This document shows, piece by piece, positions 16,672 to 37,930 of a stretch of DNA of 64,000 bases (the stretch's first letter is position 1; every line of letters begins with the position of its first letter). The stretch is from Scyliorhinus canicula (taxonomy: Eukaryota). The stretch is taken from assembly GCF_902713615.1 (NCBI RefSeq), contig NC_052147.1, positions 93,121,044 through 93,185,043 of the forward strand, given 5' to 3'. Under the pieces are notes generated by a model that worked only from the letters and a program-made list of their open reading frames with translations, ran no database searches and had not been told where the DNA came from. The position numbers were made by a program, and so were the translations under genes.

Positions 16672-17033
16672 TTGGGGCCTCACGGTAGCAGTTGGGGCCT
16701 CACGGTAGCATGGTGGTTAGCATCAATGCTTCACAGCTCCAGGGTCCCAGGTTCGATTCCCGGCTGGGTCACTGTCTGTGTGGAGTCTGCACGTCCTCCC
16801 GTGTGTGCGTGGGTTTCCTCCGGGTGCTCCGGTTTCCTCCCACAGACCAAAGATGTGCGGGTTAGGTGGATTGGCCATGCTAAATTGCCCGTAGTGTAAG
16901 GTTAATGGGGGGATTGTTGGGTTACGGGTATACGGGTTACGTGGGTTTAAGTAGGGTGATCATTGCTCGGCACAACATCGAGGGCCGAAGGGCCTGTTCT
17001 GTGCTGTACTGTTCTATGTTCTATGTTCTATGT
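16672..17033 (+). mobile_element. Young V-SINE, (TTCTATG)n CR1-tail subfamily, with duplicated 5' end
   Basis: TSD aaagtca (16665-16671 / 17034-17040); near-identical to the copies at 19423 and 32650. Confidence 0.92.
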
Positions 17034-28081: not shown

Positions 28082-28250
28082 GCTGAATGGATCCTATGAA
28101 GCGCTGAAGGGTGGCAACACCACGGAAGCCATGGAAGATTTCACCGGTGGTGTTACTGAATTCTTTGAGATGAAGGAGGCCCCGAAGGATCTGTACAAGA
28201 TCCTAAAGAAGGCAACAGACAGAGGCTCTCTAATGGGCTGTTCTATTGAT
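28082..28250 (+). CDS. CAPN3: Calpain-3 exon (exon 5 equivalent): [56 protein letters not shown]
   Basis: tttcactcag| and GAT|gtaagt; 169 nt; [14 protein letters not shown] and GSLMGCSID match CAPN3. Confidence 0.97.
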
Positions 28251-28419
28251 GTAAGTGTGCCCCCCCCCCCCCCCCCGGTGGCAAAATATTGACATGCCAG
28301 CTCCTGTGCTTCTGTTTTTTTTCAATAATTTTTTGAGTTATGTATATACATTGAAATGTTATTTCAAGCTGGAGAATGCCTACTTGGACTACTGTTTTAT
28401 ACAAACTGTCCAAAGTAGA

Positions 28420-28705
28420 TTGATTGAGAGACACAGTCTGCAGCCGCCACGCGAGGTCCTCGAAAGTTGTGAGGACACGTGTGCCACGCCGTTGGGGATT
28501 TGGCCCATCGGGGGCGAAGCATGGGGGAGGGCCTCAGGTGACATCCTGAGGCCGTCCCGACAGCATGCAGCATACTCCTCGAGTATGCCATTTTTGAGGG
28601 AATGGAGCATTGGAAAAACGGCGCCACCCTCAATTCCAGTGTAAAAGTGGATTCTTGCCGATCACCAAACGCGATTTCGGCGTCGGCGATCGGAGAATCC
28701 AGCCC
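28420..28705 (-). mobile_element. Harbinger MITE end fragment, inverted relative to 26829
   Basis: Ends ggagaatccagccc; about 120 bp align in reverse complement to 26829-26950. Confidence 0.75.
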
Positions 28706-29651
28706 AATAAGTGTAGAGATGTCTCATTGTTCAGTGAGTTACAGAGGAGCAGCATGTGAGACTACAAAGCCTGTGCTATCTCCATGTGATATAATACACT
28801 CCTCCCTCTCCATGTGATATCATAGACCTTCCTTCCTCCATGTGTGATATCATAGACACCACTTTTGGCCCCATGTGTTATAAGCTGGGATGTTACTGTT
28901 CCGTAGAAGGGCCATATGAGCTCTAAACGTTAACTCCGTTTCTCTCTCTACAAATGCTGCCAGACCTGCTGGTTATAAATAGGTTAGCCTCACTCCTCAA
29001 AGCTTGGATATACAGTTTTTGGTGCAAATTTGGCCACTGATCATCTGCTACAGTTGCTTTCTGTTAGTTTAAATCTTTGTTCCTTGTCTGTACCATTCAT
29101 TCAGACCAGAAATAAGGCAGCTGTTAGAAACAGTAAATTATGCAATTGGAATTAAACAGATGCTGATGTCCCGATCCTATGGCTCCATGATTTCCCAGCC
29201 TGGGTTTCCCTGCCTCTTTCCCTTTGCCCAAGCAACACCGAGTGGATAGTGGGCCACTGCTATCTCTTTACCAGGTTTTGGCACCCCAGCAAATGGTCCA
29301 GAGCACCATGAAATTATAGAAATCAGTAGGTTTCACCTGGGTGAGTGCATTCATAAAGCACCTGAGAAGGCTGATCAGGGTGGGAGGGCTATTATCAACA
29401 ACTCTACATTCCAAGCTAAACAAAAAACTGGTTTATCTCTGTCTCTAATATGTTGTGTAGTTCCCACTGTATTCATTTTACAAGTCTCACTTGCTCTCAC
29501 TCCCTCCTCTCTATGTCATTTTCTCTCCCACTCACTCTTCACATTATCCTAATCACTCACATGCTTTCTTTTCTCTCTTTTTCTTTTTCTTATTCTCTTT
29601 CACTGTATCAGGTTGTATTTCCTCAATCCCTGTCACTCTCACGCTGTCATG

Positions 29652-29879
29652 TTTAAAAAATAAATTTAGAGTACCCAATTCATTTTTTTCCAATTAAAGG
29701 GCAATTTAGCGTGGCCAATCCACCTAGCCTGCACATCTTTGGGTTGTGGGGGCGAAACCCATGCAAACACGGGGAGAATGTACAAACTCCACACGGACAG
29801 TGACCCAGAGCCGGGATCGAACCTGGGACCTCGGCACCGTGAGGCAGCGGGACTCACCCACTGCGCCATCGTGCTGCCT
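29652..29879 (-). mobile_element. A-tailed V-SINE
   Basis: Perfect 16-bp TSD ctctcacgctgtcatg (29636-29651 / 29880-29895). Confidence 0.93.
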
Positions 29880-30261
29880 CTCTCACGCTGTCATGACCTA
29901 GCCCACACTCTCTTGCTGTGCCAGTCATCCCAACTCATTGTCTTGTGGCGTCTTTTTGGCTTACTCCTGTTCTCTCCCTTACCAATGCTATTTTACCCAC
30001 TCTCACTGTCATCTCTATCTTAATCAATTTTATGTTTGGATATTGAAGCAGTCTGTGTTCATATACAGCAAGACTTGGACAATGTTCATGTTTGGGCTGA
30101 TAAGTGGCAAGTAACATTCTTGCCACATATGTGATAGGCAATCCCTAACAAGAGGGAATGTAACCATCTCCCCATGACATGCAAGGCATTAGCGTTGCTG
30201 AAAGAATACACTTTGTCGATGTAGTCATCAGGACATTTGCATGAACAGAGGGTGTTGACAA

Positions 30262-30430
30262 TCAAAGATGTGCAGGTTAGGTGGATTGGCCATGCTAAAT
30301 TACCCCTTAAGGTCGGGTTGCAGAAAAAGGGCTGGGGATTGGGCCTAGGTTGGGAGGTCTTTCGAAGGGTCAGTGCAGACTTGATGGGCCAAATAGCCTT
30401 TGTCTGCACTGTAGGAATTCAATGTTCTAT
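30262..30430 (+). mobile_element. 5'-truncated HE1-like V-SINE
   Basis: caaagatgtgcaggttaggtggattggccatgc... through the CR1-type tail. Confidence 0.75.
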
Positions 30431-31269
30431 ATTCAAATTTAAAATTGTCAGTTGGGCTCATAGTGTGTCGCATTTGCGTGTACTGGACGCCACATATATT
30501 ATTACACAGGGTCTTGGCTTTGCAGACAGAAAGAACATGTACACATGTGGTGCCTGTTTCAGCTAAACAAAATAAGTGGTTGAAATTCACTGGTCCATTC
30601 CTCAGGGCAATACCTTGACCAATTGGAGTCAAGCTGCCTGGTTTAAATTTCAAACAATGCTTGGTAGTTTGCTGTCAGTTACCATCAACTGGTTCATTCT
30701 GCTCTGTCAATCAGTCCACTTGTCAATCAACCATTGATCAGTGGCAGGATCTTCCAGTCCCTCTGGTATCGGGGAACCCATGACAGGGGCTCGTCGCCAG
30801 CAGGACAGGACGATCCTGCCGGCGTGAATTGCCGGAAAATCTCGTGATCTGGTTTCGGACAAAGCTCGGCACAACATCGAGGGCCGAAGGGCCTGTTCTG
30901 TGCTGTACTGTTCTATGTTCTATGTTCGATATAAATCGGATCGACAACAAAACATTGACCTTCCAGCAATGCCCACATCTGGTGAAGGAATTTTTAAAAT
31001 GCTGCCTCTTTCTCCCCAATACATTGTTGTTTTCCAAAGCTACCTATTTATCTTTCTGTTTCTGTTGATTCTTCCCTTTATGTCTGGCATCTTTCCTTTA
31101 ATTACTTGTCCTGTTTTTCTCTCTCTCATGCTTTTGTGTGCTGCCTCTCCCTTTTTTCTCTCAAACTGTCTCACTCTCTGTTTGTCTGCCGATCTCTCTT
31201 TGTCTCTCTCTGCTATTCCCCACTGCTCTTCTGTTGTCTGATACCCTGTAATGTTCTCTGATATTCCAG

Positions 31270-31407
31270 GAAGGTCTTTTTCGTGGGACAGGTGTCATCC
31301 CACAAGCACAGATTCAAAGGTTTCTGCTTAATGCTGCAATTGCTCCGGATAGATCTAAGTCCAAAGTTGGTGATCAGAGCAAGAATTTGGATGACATTCC
31401 TTCCAGG
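31270..31407 (+). CDS. CAPN3: Candidate IS1 cassette exon (exon 6 position): EGLFRGTGVIPQAQIQRFLLNAAIAPDRSKSKVGDQSKNLDDIPSR
   Basis: Follows a ~250-nt CU-rich tract; atattccag| acceptor, AGG|gtttgt donor; 138 nt, phase 0-0, stop-free. Position and size are close to human exon 6 (144 nt). Protein similarity to tetrapod IS1 is weak. Confidence 0.7.
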
Positions 31408-31444
31408 GTTTGTATTGCAATAGGAGAAGTGGTGATTTGAGGCA

Positions 31445-31492
31445 ACTAATGATTGCACCTGCAATGCATGCTGGCTAACTGGTATGGCTAAC
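31445..31492 (+). promoter_or_regulatory. Intronic splicing-enhancer cluster (QKI/RBFOX-type) downstream of the candidate IS1 exon
   Basis: ACTAAT 31445-31450, TGCATG 31465-31470, CTAAC at 31475 and 31488, all within 85 nt of the donor. Confidence 0.6.
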
Positions 31493-31626
31493 TATCCTGA
31501 ATAATCGGGAACTCAGCACAGTTACGCAGTGAGTAAACCGTACCCAGCTGAACAAACAGGAATTCTGCACAGTTCCAGCTCTTGGTCTGTAGCCCTGTAG
31601 GTAACAGCACCTCAAGCACAGATCTG

Positions 31627-32281
31627 GGGCGGTATTCTCCTGCCGGGTGGGAGAATCGCTGGGGTGCCGCCCAAATCTCGCCACGCCGCCCCAACCACCG
31701 CACGTGATTCTCCCACCCCCACCCAAACCGGCACCGGGCCGCTCTGAGAATCGCCGTAAACGGCGAGCGGCGATTCTCCGGCCCGGATGGGCCGAGTGGC
31801 CATGCGTAAACGGCCCAGTCCCGCCGGTGCTGTCCACACCTGGTCGCTGCCAGCGGGTACTCATCGCAAAGGCTTGGGGGGCGGCCTGTGCGGGTGGGAG
31901 GGGGGCTCCATTCCTGGGGGGGGGGGGGGGGGGGCTCCCGAGTGGCCTGGTACGCGATCGGGTCAAACTGATCGGCGGGCCGGCCTCTCTGTCGGTGGGC
32001 CTCCTTTCTTCCGCTGGCGAGCCCGGATACATCCGCCATGTTTGTGCGGGGCGGCATGGGGGAGGACGGCCACCGCGCATGCGCTAGTTGGCTCCGGCCC
32101 AACTGCGGTTGCGCGGGACCCAAGGTGCCGAGGCCCCGCCCCCGTAAATTCCACGACGCCCCTGCTAGCCCCATGGAGGGGGGAGAATAGGGGTCTAGGA
32201 ACGGACACCGACGCTGGAGTAAAACACTCTGGTTTTTACTCCGGCGTCGGCACTTAGATTCCTGTTGGGAGAATCCCGCCC
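31627..32281. mobile_element. Harbinger-type MITE
   Basis: TIRs gggcggtattctcc / ggagaatcccgccc; flanks ctg/atg. Confidence 0.85.
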
Positions 32282-32649
32282 ATGGTGTTCTTGATTAATA
32301 AGGGGATCAGTGGCTTTGGGGAGAAAGCAGGAAAATTGGGATCAGGAACATTTCAGCCATAATCGAATGGCAGAGCAGACTCAATGGGCCACACAGCCTA
32401 ATTCTGCTCCGCTATCGTATGGTCTTACAGTGTGTAACCCTTACCCTGTTGACTAAGTAGGAATTGCATAGTTTCATAATGGGTAATCCTACCGCTACTG
32501 AATAAATAGGAACTCTGTACTGTTAATGCTGAATAAACGAGGGGATAGATTTCTTCCACTGTTGTCCCAATCTGTCATTTGGCAGAGGTTTGATACAACC
32601 TCAGAGAAGCATCTGAAATGGCTAAATTACAGCTGGAGATATGAAGAAT

Positions 32650-32981
32650 CATAGAACATAGAACAGTACAGCACAGAACAGGCCCTTCGGCCCTCGATGT
32701 TGTGCCGAGCAATGATCACCCTACTTAAACCCACGTAACCCGTATACCCGTAACCCAACAATCCCCCCATTAACCTTACACTACGGGCAATTTAGCATGG
32801 CCAATCCACCTAACCCGCACATCTTTGGACTGTGGGAGGAAACCGGAGCACCCGGAGGAAACCCACGCACACACAGGGAGGACGTGCAGACTCCACACAG
32901 ACAGTGACCCAGCCGGGAACCGAACCTGGGACCCTGGAGCTGTGAAGCATTGATGCTAACCACCATGCTGCCGTGAGGCCC
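32650..32981 (-). mobile_element. Young V-SINE, (TTCTATG)n CR1-tail subfamily
   Basis: Near-perfect reverse complement of 16694-17033. Confidence 0.93.
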
Positions 32982-33214
32982 AAATCCTGTCAGACCTTTT
33001 ATTCCAAGCATCATGCCCACTGCTTACATCTCAACTGTGTGGCTCTGACTAAAATCTTTGATTTGCAAAACCAAAACACATGGCTAGATCTTAATTTTAT
33101 TTAGATGAAGTGGCATTCCAAATCACTGCTAATTTTACAATTAGAAGCATTCTGTCCTGGAATGGCAAAATGCCGTGCTGATACTGATTGACACACAGTT
33201 GGTGGCAATTCAGT

Positions 33215-33835
33215 GGGCGGGATTCTCTCAGACTACGCCGGGCCGGAGAATCGCTGAGCTGGGCGTGAATCGCGTGACGACGCCCCGACGCAGTCAGCAC
33301 GGCGCTGGTCAGGGGCCGCTCTACGCAGCCCCCCTGCGATTCTCCGCCCAGGATGGGCCGAGCGGCTGCACATAAAATCCGAGTCCTGCCATCCATGTAT
33401 GGTCTTACCCAGCAGGACCTCGGCGTGCATGCATCCGGAGGTGGCCTGGTGGGGGGGTACAACCCTGCGGTTGCCTCCGCTGTGGCCCGGCCTGCATTGG
33501 GGCCTACCGATCGGCGGGCTCGCCTCTCGGGCTGGGGACCTCTTTTGCTCCGCGCCGGCCCATGTAGCCCTTCGCCGTGTTGTGTCGGGGCCGGCGGGGA
33601 GAAGGGTGCCACTGTGCATGCACGCATTGGCGCCAGTCGCACTGCGTATGCGCACACCCGCGGCGCCCATTTGATGCCGGTCAGCTGCTGGAGCAGCGTG
33701 GGTCACTCCAGTGCCGTGCTGGCCCCCTGTAGGAGTCAGAATCGCTGCTCCTGAGGGCATGTTGATGCCGTCGTGAAATGTGACACCGTTTATGACGGCG
33801 TCAACACTTAGCCTCAGGATCAGAGAATCCATCCC
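33215..33835. mobile_element. Harbinger-type MITE
   Basis: TIRs gggcgggattctct / agagaatccatccc; 3-bp TSD AGT on both sides. Confidence 0.88.
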
Positions 33836-34112
33836 AGTGTGTCCAATGAATCCCAATTAAAGGCATTTTCAAGACAATAGAACTCCTTTAATGTCAACCT
33901 ATTTTTACCTTGTGCCCCAGTTTTAAATGTGTGGCATTTGTAGTTGCTCCAAGCCCTGTTGCGCAGCATGATGGCTAAAGCCACCAACTCTGTTTGGTGG
34001 CAGCTTGAGTTCTCAGCTTTGTTGAGCTAACAGTGTGAAGTGCAGTATGAAGTCCAACATGTTTGTTTTGAATGCATACACTCATCCAGGATTTGCTAAA
34101 GATGCTAGTAAG

Positions 34113-34395
34113 TGTGGTGAATGTAACATGATAATTCACATCTTTGTAAGCGCAGTAGCGTTATCCGACCACTAGGGGAGTAGCTCTGGGAATGCTCAGG
34201 AGCTTGTACAGAGCTCCAGCCTGGGCTCCGCCCACAACTCCTCTCCCTAGTGCTGCTGTATAAATACCCTTGTCCAGAGTCAGCCTGCAGTTCACTGAGA
34301 GTTCATCAACGGGTAACAAGCTGGCTTTGTAGTAAGTCGATTAAAGCCTATATTCATATCGGAAACACTTGTCTAGTGAATTGATGGTTCCATCA
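34113..34395 (+). mobile_element. Solo LTR (probably Gypsy-type) carrying a CTCF-like motif
   Basis: TG...CA ends, TATAAATA (~34259), ATTAAA (~34340), TSD gtaag/ataag; same family as 50139 and 58454. Confidence 0.85.
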
Positions 34396-34586
34396 ATAAG
34401 ATTTTTACAAGCCTGACTGCGCTAATTGCCATTTATGCCTCACACCTGGCTGGAATATTTGAGGTAACCTTTAATTCCATCAATCATTGATTAAAGTGTT
34501 TTTCTTAAAAATTGATGGGGATAAAATTATAAATGCCTCAATAAAATATGTTCTAAAAAAACGACAGGGATTTGGGAGAGGTCAAG

Positions 34587-34803
34587 GAAAAGAAAAGAAA
34601 ATAATCTTTATTGTGACAAGTAGGATTACGTTAACACTGCAATGAAGGTACTGTGAAAAGCCCCGAGTCGCCACATTCCGGCGCCTGTTCAGGTGCACAC
34701 AGGGAGAATTCAGAATTCCCAGCTGGTACAGGAATTGAATCCGCGCTGCTGGCCTTGTTCTGCATCACAAATCAGCTGTCTAGCCCACTGAGCTAAACCA
34801 GCC
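34587..34803 (-). mobile_element. tRNA-derived SINE without V-core, sharing the tail of the (ATT)n V-SINE subfamily
   Basis: Head ggctggtttagctcagtggg...gattcaattcc joined directly to the tail aatgtggcgact...cctacttgtcacaataaag. Confidence 0.75.
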
Positions 34804-35420
34804 ATAAGCCAAGGAAGTGGATGGCAGGGAGATGTTCTTGTATTCCCTGAGTGTCCTGCACAAGAATGGGAATACCTGCATGCCAGCACGATGCATGTTG
34901 CTTTCCTGCACACAGGACTACATGGCACAAATTACTGTGTTCTTGTGAGGCAGTGTTGGAGTGCTTACACAGCAGTTCAGTGCAGATATATCATTGGTTC
35001 AAGTTTATTCCCTTGCATCTCCAGAAAATGTGAGGCACGGGGTTTGTAGATTTGGTAGAAAGTGAGAGGCAGGGGGGCTTGCAGAAACCAAGTGACATTA
35101 CAGAAAAACCTTCTCCTCCACTTTTCCTCCGCCCATGATGAACAGTTGTTTTCCAGCTTGGAGATGTGTTAATAGTGGAGTTCCCCAGTGGTCAGTGTGG
35201 GGACCTTTGCTCTTCCTCATAGATATTAATGACCTAGCCTGTGGTCTTCAGGGCATGATTTAAAAATTTGTAGATTATATGAAGATTGGAAATGTTGTCA
35301 ACTGTGATGAGGATAGTCATGAGGTTCAAAAGGACATTGATGTATTGGTTGATTGGGCAGACACGTGGCAGATGAAATTCAATGCAGAGAAGTGTGAAGT
35401 GATTAATTTTGGCAGGAAGA

Positions 35421-36328
35421 TGTTAGATCCGAGATAATCAGCCACACATAGGCCGCAGGTTAGAGCACAAAGAGATTTATTATTACTTACTGTCAAATCA
35501 CCACCACTCCCGGAGGGTCTCCTTCTCCGACCTGCACCCAGGTCAGGGTTTTTATACTAGAGGGGTTACACCTGTGAAGGTAAAAGCCCTGCCCCTTTGC
35601 CGGGGAAGTTCATGGGCGGGATTCTCCGACCCTCCACTCGCCGGGTCGGAGAATCCCTGGGGGGCGGCGTGAATCCCGCCCCGCCGCTCTGATGCCGGCT
35701 GCCGTATTCTCCTACGCCGGATTTCGGGCGGGGCGGGGATCATGCTGCACCGGTCGGGGGCTGTTGGTAGCGCCCCCCCCCAGCAATTTCCCGGGCCCCG
35801 ATGGGACGAGCGACCATTGGTTTCTGGCCAGTCCCACCAGTGTGGATTGGGCAAGGTCCCACCTGGTAGGCCGGCTGGTGCGGTCCTCGGGGAGACGCGG
35901 GCGGATCTGGCCCCGGGGGAGCCCCACGGTGGCCTGGCCTGCGATCGGAGCCCACTGATCTGTGGGCGGGCCTGTGCAGTGGGGGCACTCCTTCCTTCTG
36001 TGCCGGCCCCTGTAGGGCCCCGCCATGGCCGGCGCAGAGAAGACACCCCACTGCGCATGCGCGAGAATACACTGGCCGGTCTGCGCATGCGCGGAACCAT
36101 GCCGGAGTTCTGCGCATGCGCTAACTCGTGCCAGCTCTTCGGCACCGATTGGCATGGCAGCAACCCCTCTGGCGCCGGCCTAGATCTGGAAGTGTGGAGT
36201 GGTTTGCGCCGCTTTTTATGCAGGTGTTGGGCCATCGCGGAGATTCGGGAGAATACCGGCCCAGATTCCCCGGTGGGCACGGGAAACCTGATAGTTCATA
36301 TCCCGTGACTTCTGCTGGGGTTATAACA
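35421..36328 (-). mobile_element. Solo LTR, itself interrupted by a MITE
   Basis: TG...CA ends, perfect 5-bp TSD gaaga (35416-35420 / 36329-36333), minus-strand TATAAAAA (35549-35556) and AATAAA (35476-35481). Confidence 0.88.
35614..36261. mobile_element. Harbinger-type MITE (CpG-rich, three TGCGCATGCGC motifs)
   Basis: TIRs gggcgggattctcc / ggagaataccggcc; flanks cat/cag. Confidence 0.85.
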
Positions 36329-37149
36329 GAAGAACATGGAGATAAAATTAAGGGAGAAATTCTAAAGGAGCTGCAGGTCAGAGAGGCCTCGGTGTAAATG
36401 TACATAAGTCATTGAAGGTGGCAGGGCATGTTGAGAGAATGGTTAGTAAAGCACATGGTATCCTAGGTTGTATTAACAGTCACTGAGTACAAGAGTAAGG
36501 GATCATGTTGAACTTGTATAGGACATGAGTTGGCCTCATATGGAATACTACATCCAGTTCCTGGCACCATACTTGAGAAAGATGTGAATGCATAGGAGGG
36601 TGTACAGACGAGATTCACAAGAATGATTCCAGGGAATCAACTATAGCTATGAGGATAGATTAGAGAAGTTGGGCCGATCTTCCTTGGAGAAAAGAAAGCT
36701 GAGAGGATACTTGATAGTGGTTTTAAAGATCCTTAGGGTTATGGACAGGGTAAGAGAGCAACTATTCCCACTCAAGAGAGCATCAAGAACTAGAGAGCAC
36801 AGATTCAAAATAATTGGCAAAAGGAATAAAACTGATGTGAGGAAATTTATTTTTACCTAGACGGTGGTTGGAGTTTGGACTTAACTTCCTGAGAGGGTGG
36901 TGGAGGCAGTTTGACCGAGGAATTCAAAAAGGAATTGGATTGCTTTCTGAAAAGAAAGAATGTTCAAGGTTATGGGGATAAGGCAGGGAAATGGAACTAT
37001 GCAGAATGCCCTTTCAGAGAGCCAGTGCAGACTCGATGGGCTGAATGGCCTCCTTCTGAACTGTAAAGTTTATGTGATTCTGCTGATTCACAGAGGATAC
37101 AGGTTGTTGGCCAATGGCAGTTGGGGTATGGATCTTTGGGGATTAATAA

Positions 37150-37346
37150 TGAAAAAAAAATGAAAATGAAAATGAAAATCGCTTATTGTCCCGAGTAGGC
37201 TTCAATGAAGTTACTGTGAAAAGCCCCTAGTCGCCACATTCCAGCGCCTGTTCAGGGAGGCTGGTACGGGAATTGAACCGTGCTGCTGGCCTGCCTTGGT
37301 CTGCTTTAAAAGCCAGTGATTTAGCCCAGTGTGCTAAACCAGCCCC
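37150..37346 (-). mobile_element. Short tRNA-derived SINE without V-core, same tail family as 34587, ending in (ATTTTC)n
   Basis: Head ggggctggtttagcaca...ggttcaattcc; tail aatgtggcgactaggggcttttcacagtaacttcattg. Confidence 0.75.
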
Positions 37347-37846
37347 TGGTTTTAGTGAGAGGTGGATAGTTGTTGAGAGGAAGGAGTATTTCACAGTAGC
37401 CCATCCCTGTCCTGACATGAAGTCCACATGTTGGGTAACACTGAAAATCAAGAAGCTTGGTTCACACTTTCTATCATTAACATAGGTGCACAGAGATTAA
37501 ATGGGGGGTAGCGTGGTTTTGCCCCACCAGACTCATAATTCTATACAGGGCAAGGAACAAAATCAGCTCTCCTGGCTTGCACAGCTGAACTATCTGTTGG
37601 ATAAACTCCATCGGGAGTTTGGCTAGGGGCGTGGTGGGCAGAGGGACTTGGCGGGGGACCTCAATATATCTCTGGAATGAAAGGATAATTCCCACTGACT
37701 TTCCGTCATTACCCAGAAATTAGGTCATAAAAACAGACAGGCATATGCCAAGTCACATTGTAGAAAGGCTTTATCGCTCTACGCAGCTAACTGTTAAGCA
37801 GTGTCACACTACCAACACAATCTCACTGATTTTTCTGTTTCAACAG

Positions 37847-37930
37847 TCTTTTGTACCTCTGCAGTTTGAGACACGGACTGCCAGTGGCCTGGTCAAGGGT
37901 CACGCGTACTCTGTGACCGGTGTGGATGAG
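37847..37930 (+). CDS. CAPN3: Calpain-3 exon (exon 7 equivalent), catalytic His: [28 protein letters not shown]
   Basis: tttcaacag| and GAG|gtaagg; 84 nt; GHAYSVTG motif (His codon 37901-37903). Confidence 0.97.

Follow-up and report, generated by a model that had tools for sequence, protein, structure and literature searches.

An annotated cassette exon at the IS1 position of calpain-3 in Scyliorhinus canicula and a conserved intronic element downstream of it

In human and mouse, exon 6 of CAPN3 encodes IS1, an insert in the protease sub-domain PC2 of calpain-3 (p94; Protein Data Bank 6BDT, 6BGP, 6BJD). The exon is a cassette. In mouse, loss of Rbfox1 raises the level of the Capn3 isoform without exon 6 (PMC3536703), and exon-6 mis-splicing has been linked to mammalian muscle disease. 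Sea bream and halibut are reported to lack IS1 (PMC3783371), and the fish-physiology literature calls it "present in tetrapods", whereas public gene models put it in the jawed-vertebrate ancestor. Here, we compare these systems with a calpain-3 locus of Scyliorhinus canicula contained in a 64,000-nt stretch of contig NC_052147.1 (hereafter, the window). The main value of the comparison is corrective: the exon under study is real and already present in public annotation, and hence no hidden-exon discovery. What remains of modest interest is a conserved intronic element and a statement on the ancestry of IS1.

RefSeq names the S. canicula gene "calpain-3-like" rather than CAPN3. To establish its identity, we queried phmmer with exon 5 and ran two word-indexed searches. 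These brought up vertebrate calpain-3 proteins, and the nearest database proteins across vertebrates are named calpain-3. Most hits of the representative search with exon 5 were ORF fragments that read through into genomic sequence, with V-S... after GCSID. When the 46-aa peptide was searched by itself, among protein candidates of 25–80 aa, there was no match. Among solved structures, the human calpain-3 core (6BDT; HMMER, E = 1.3e-114) is the closest relative, and the catshark core aligns to it in a single stretch through IS1; other calpains mostly align just up to the IS1 insertion point. In Chiloscyllium plagiosum, a GANC-like glycosyl-hydrolase-31 gene (979 aa) ends directly upstream of CAPN3, the GANC–CAPN3 arrangement also known in human. 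Between GCSID and exon 7 of the catshark gene lies a single frame-neutral PC2 exon, whose length falls inside the ~117–144 nt range of IS1 exons (Table 1). We consider it very probable that this segment is exon 6 of the S. canicula CAPN3/p94 orthologue and that it encodes IS1.

Table 1. Features of the calpain-3 locus in the window, as assigned in this work (position 1 is the first nucleotide of the window; offsets count from the end of exon 6)
Feature	Position	Strand	Remarks
CAPN3 exon 5	28082..28250	+	ends ...GCSID; donor GAT/GTAAGT; translation is an exact substring of XP_038639059.1
CU-rich tract upstream of exon 6	31020..31269	+	76% pyrimidine; 6 CTCTCT, 5 TCTT; ends in acceptor TTCCAG
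CAPN3 exon 6 (IS1 cassette exon)	31270..31407	+	138 nt, phase 0/0, 46 aa; peptide exact in RefSeq X1–X5
Downstream intronic block kept between catshark and thorny skate	31408..31562	+	starts with weak donor GTTTGT
TGCATG (RBFOX-type motif)	31465..31470	+	+58; same position in thorny skate
CTAAC (QKI half-site / branch-point-like)	31475..31479	+	+68; skate +68, zebra shark +67
CAPN3 exon 7	37847..37930	+	84 nt; starts SFVPLQ after CAACAG

The segment at 31270–31407 is flanked by ...TTCCAG on its 5' side and by GTTTGT on its 3' side (AG/GT ends) and is translated without stops into EGLFRGTGVIPQAQIQRFLLNAAIAPDRSKSKVGDQSKNLDDIPSR (46 aa, EGLFRG...DDIPSR). This exact peptide stands between GCSID and SFVPLQ in five RefSeq isoforms (X1–X5: XP_038639059.1, XP_038639067.1, XP_038639078.1, XP_038639089.1, XP_038639101.1). 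The junctions 28250>31270 and 31407>37847 are the only canonical ones that give isoform X1, and the translations of ten window exons (exons 3–11 and 13) are all exact substrings of the X1 protein. Set against the window, X1–X5 match residue for residue at the peptide, at both junctions, and in all flanking window exons, with no difference found. Isoforms X6–X9 skip exon 6 and join GCSID directly to SFVPLQ. The 138-nt segment is a real exon; its use agrees in full with the proposal, and the models treat it as a cassette. The initial annotation had described it as a hidden, IS1-position cassette exon of CAPN3 that homology-based annotation could miss. Its letters and coordinates proved correct, its IS1 assignment is borne out by the RefSeq peptide, the junctions, and the alignment to human IS1, and its cassette character holds at the level of annotation (included in X1–X5, skipped in X6–X9). 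The word "hidden" had to be abandoned. Exon 6 is neither hidden nor new, since it is already annotated in RefSeq for S. canicula (XP_038639059.1 and four more) and for seven other shark species.

The modelled gene is large, spanning ~182 kb in the catshark (GCA_902713615.2) and 148–183 kb across S. canicula, Carcharodon, and Chiloscyllium, and its isoforms extend beyond the presence or absence of exon 6. Isoforms X7 and X8 begin with an alternative first exon (MPYTASGHF..., MPYTASGHFCDRL...) and are without IS1; the first exons fall outside the window, on its upstream side. X8 lacks both IS1 and IS2 and has 709 aa, as do mouse isoform b and sheep Lp82, to which X7 is 74% identical. In X3, a lens-type first exon is joined to IS1. 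Judging from these gene models, the lens-type Lp82/Rt88 isoform plan seems to be as old as the jawed vertebrates.

The sequences flanking exon 6 carry several splice signals. The initial annotation had listed a ~250-nt CU-rich tract upstream and, within 85 nt downstream, ACTAAT, TGCATG, and two CTAAC motifs, all of which are present, and had read them together as a muscle-type splicing code. The pyrimidine content of the upstream tract ranks in the top 0.35% of 250-nt stretches in the 64-kb window. Zebra shark, thorny skate, and bowfin have a similar composition ahead of the orthologous exon (~0.72–0.80 pyrimidine over 200 nt), although only ~24 nt can be aligned. An extended CU-rich tract with UCUU and CUCUCU ahead of the acceptor is a hallmark of PTBP-repressed exons, and by its letters the catshark tract would qualify.

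On the downstream side, the shark–skate blastn alignment extends 155 nt beyond exon 6, compared with at most 33 nt beyond the other exons, and ungapped identity in this block is 69/100. The exon-6 donor, AGG/GTTTGT, matches CAG/GTAAGT at 5/9 positions, the lowest value of exons 4–10. Zebra shark and thorny skate share it unchanged, and GTTTGTAT is identical in the two. Within ~300 nt downstream of exon 6 there is a (U)GCAUG motif, the TGCATG at +58, against a background rate of 0.045 per 100 nt. It sits in a ~34-nt block that is near-identical between catshark and thorny skate. Zebra shark has TGCATT at this site and no GCATG within 300 nt; in bowfin, the first 100 nt of the downstream intron contain GCATG twice, at +29 and +94. 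Of the proposed muscle-type code, the TGCATG and the first CTAAC thus persist in thorny skate, whereas the ACTAAT at 31445 (+38), which is ATTAAT in zebra shark and missing in skate, and the second CTAAC at 31488, present in catshark, are not conserved. The bipartite ACUAAY ... UAAY element of a QKI-regulated exon does not stand up to comparison across species, only the CTAAC at +68 being kept.

Given the weak donor, the kept TGCATG block, and the effect of Rbfox1 in mouse (PMC3536703), an RBFOX-type enhancer that compensates the weak donor is plausible by analogy. More tentatively, the weak-donor IS1 exon and the putative conserved downstream intronic enhancer (TGATTGCAYCTGCRATGCATGCTGGCTAACTGG) may have formed an RBFOX-dependent muscle switch in the shark–skate ancestor, and possibly in all jawed vertebrates, a proposal to which we give somewhat less than even chances. 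If true, Capn3 exon 6 would be among the oldest conserved RBFOX-regulated events, lost in teleosts along with the exon. The conserved weak donor and the shark–skate UGCAUG block constitute a concrete, testable regulatory element.

These flanking features bear on whether the exon is regulated. It could be real but effectively constitutive in the catshark, with X6–X9 being rare or combinatorial products of Gnomon. Catshark skipping is known from Gnomon models, and Gnomon freely combines alternative events, as X3 with its lens-type first exon and IS1 illustrates. We regard this reading as unlikely. Independent models of IS1-skipping forms exist for S. torazame, Carcharodon, Chiloscyllium, Hemiscyllium, and bowfin, the 709-aa isoforms of sheep and mouse share 74% identity with the Lp82-like forms of the same length, in which IS1 and IS2 are absent, and a weak conserved donor followed by a long conserved downstream intron is typical of regulated exons. 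The preferred reading remains that of a regulated cassette exon.

Among elasmobranchs, inserts of 44–46 aa are annotated at the same place in 7–8 other shark species. The S. torazame insert is identical to the catshark peptide at 42/46 positions (91%), and that of Pristiophorus japonicus is 44 aa long; further inserts are annotated in Mustelus asterias, Carcharodon carcharias, Cetorhinus maximus, Stegostoma tigrinum, Chiloscyllium plagiosum and C. punctatum, and Hemiscyllium ocellatum. Frame and splice sites are kept beyond the catshark: the zebra shark genomic exon has 138 nt and the same AG / GTTTGT ends, and a 3,230-nt contig from a skate RNA assembly (run SRR8090271) carries the IS1 exon in frame within one 785-aa open frame. 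Its product starts with a muscle-type N-terminus and contains both IS2 and an IS1 of 46 aa; apart from the alternative parts, the sequence is near-identical to calpain-3 of Leucoraja erinacea. The contig provides direct transcript evidence of the IS1 exon in a batoid. Shuffle z-scores of the catshark peptide against skate and sawshark are 12.9–15.4. The peptide evolves fast, with a dN/dS of 0.5–0.9 within elasmobranchs, and constraint at the protein level is therefore loose. What is kept is the frame, the length, an FxGxG start, an AQ[IV]Q.FL core, and a GD.SKN..D..P.R tail.

In the thorny skate genome (Amblyraja radiata, GCA_010909765.2), the orthologous IS1 exon lies at L003:49864-50002 with AG/GT ends and is 139 nt long. 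One extra C (TGTGTCCTCAGG compared with TGTGT-CTCAGG in the skate transcript) shifts the frame; it reflects a true lesion or else an indel introduced by the assembly. None of the four RefSeq isoforms of this species includes the exon, making A. radiata a case of annotation missing IS1.

Sequencing runs give a further view of expression. Six runs guessed to be RNA contain all ten sampled exon-6 words, and sister runs of the same studies contain none. Two of the six (X25 and X26) were not listed among the runs that match the surrounding 10 kb. This pattern, which concerns words and not junctions, fits sample-specific spliced mRNA.

Outside the elasmobranchs, the coelacanth IS1 has 46 aa and ends in GDQPSR, and those of spotted gar and bowfin have 39 aa (117-nt exon) and end in ...PAG/PTG. 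Teleosts read GCSID/SLVPAR, with no IS1 in any entry among the best 119 hits; this agrees with the published report (PMC3783371) and with the initial annotation, which had teleost capn3 joining CSID to the exon-7 sequence without IS1. Direct similarity between elasmobranch and human IS1 is weak (~20% identity; shuffle z of 2.1–3.4 for shark or skate), and shark against gar or bowfin is not significant (shuffle z of 1.1–1.5). For coelacanth, the shuffle z-scores are 3.4–5.5 with shark or skate, 6.2 with human, and 5.8 with gar.

These values invite the alternative that elasmobranchs gained their insert by independent exonization in the same intron, without homology to the IS1 of tetrapods. The marginal scores of shark against human, and the lack of significance against gar or bowfin, would be expected if that were so, but every lineage has its insert in the same intron, in phase 0/0, and 39–48 aa long, with a [DE]-[GST] start and a P-[ST]-R end in common. 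Moreover, coelacanth links a chain of significant similarity, and the HMMER alignment passes unbroken through the insert. We judge independent exonization to be improbable. Homology is the economical reading because the z-scores are joined by a shared intron position, phase, and length. Taken together, the public models of sharks, skate, coelacanth, gar, and bowfin thus show that IS1 predates the split of cartilaginous and bony vertebrates and is ancestral to jawed vertebrates, as the initial annotation had supposed. The teleost absence looks like a loss in the teleost lineage, or at least a lack of annotation, and not like the ancestral state. In the searchable literature, we found no paper stating that IS1 is ancestral and teleost-lost, or giving the ancestral picture for cartilaginous fish.

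The interval between exons 5 and 7 (intron 28250 to 37847) measures 9,596 nt and contains 353 AG...GT segments that are frame-neutral, free of stops, and 90 nt or longer. Because so many similar segments share the intron, the open frame with AG/GT ends at 31270–31407 is by itself not above chance; conservation and annotation are what raise it above that level. That the segment is nevertheless a chance open frame, a pseudo-exon never spliced in, is suggested by those 353 comparable segments but has next to no probability and is refuted in practice by the RefSeq isoforms and the skate transcript, given the exact peptide in five isoforms, the frame and length kept across sharks and skate, the exon's place in a spliced skate transcript, and the sample-specific presence of its words in RNA-type runs.

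The same interval has other features. A run of 17 C (28261–28277) directly follows the exon-5 donor (GTAAGTGTG then C17). A perfect 61-nt inverted repeat surrounds exon 6, with one arm (30864–30924) 346 nt before it and the other (32650–32710) 1,243 nt after it. In the pre-mRNA these arms could, from their sequence, pair and loop exon 6 out. The 61-mer also occurs at 16965 and 19685 and is therefore part of a dispersed repeat, and the zebra-shark match to the downstream arm (32646–32708) lies elsewhere in the zebra-shark gene. In intron 6, open frames at 36633–36836 and 35285–35398 (+ frame) encode retroelement-like peptides, e.g., GINYSYEDRLEKLGRSSLEKRKLRGYLI..., and G+C-rich stretches at ~31600–32000 and 35560–36300 resemble repeat copies, ordinary filling of an intron.

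By analogy with the mammalian enzyme, the IS1-included form would be the muscle p94-type enzyme, in which IS1, as an internal propeptide, would fill the catalytic cleft until its autolytic removal (PMC8480384, PMC3536703, 10.1101/257261). Skipping of exon 6 would then yield constitutively open lens- or embryonic-type enzymes of the Lp82-like kind, and RBFOX bound to the downstream UGCAUG would aid inclusion, offsetting the weak donor. AlphaFold2, given a 35-row alignment, modelled the protease core too poorly to place IS1 (mean pLDDT 49.5, IS1 <50), and within the insert it gave a low-confidence helix over QAQIQRFLLNA only.

Compared with the described systems, the catshark exon enters the protein at the same point as human and mouse CAPN3 exon 6, following ...GCSID and ahead of the exon-7 sequence. 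In human and catshark alike IS1 is encoded by a single frame-neutral exon (144 and 138 nt, 48 and 46 residues, respectively), with a [DE]-G start and a central hydrophobic stretch in both, and ends in P-T-R in human and P-S-R in catshark. Coelacanth, gar, and bowfin have IS1 at the same position, in isoforms with the insert and, in gar and bowfin, also in isoforms without it. The holostean insert differs in its end (PAG/PTG rather than P-S-R) and shows significant similarity to that of sharks only via coelacanth. Teleost capn3a and capn3b retain the same exons 5 and 7 as the catshark (GCSID/SLVPAR...) without IS1. Catshark X7 and X8 resemble Lp82 of the mammalian lens in their alternative first exon and the absence of IS1, and X3 resembles Rt88 of the mammalian retina in combining a lens-type first exon with IS1 (PMC8480384), the catshark side of both comparisons consisting of gene models only. 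Finally, the cassette behavior of exon 6 in human and mouse is shared by the catshark exon as modelled, and the Rbfox1 dependence of the mouse exon (PMC3536703) has a counterpart in the RBFOX-type motif downstream of the catshark exon.
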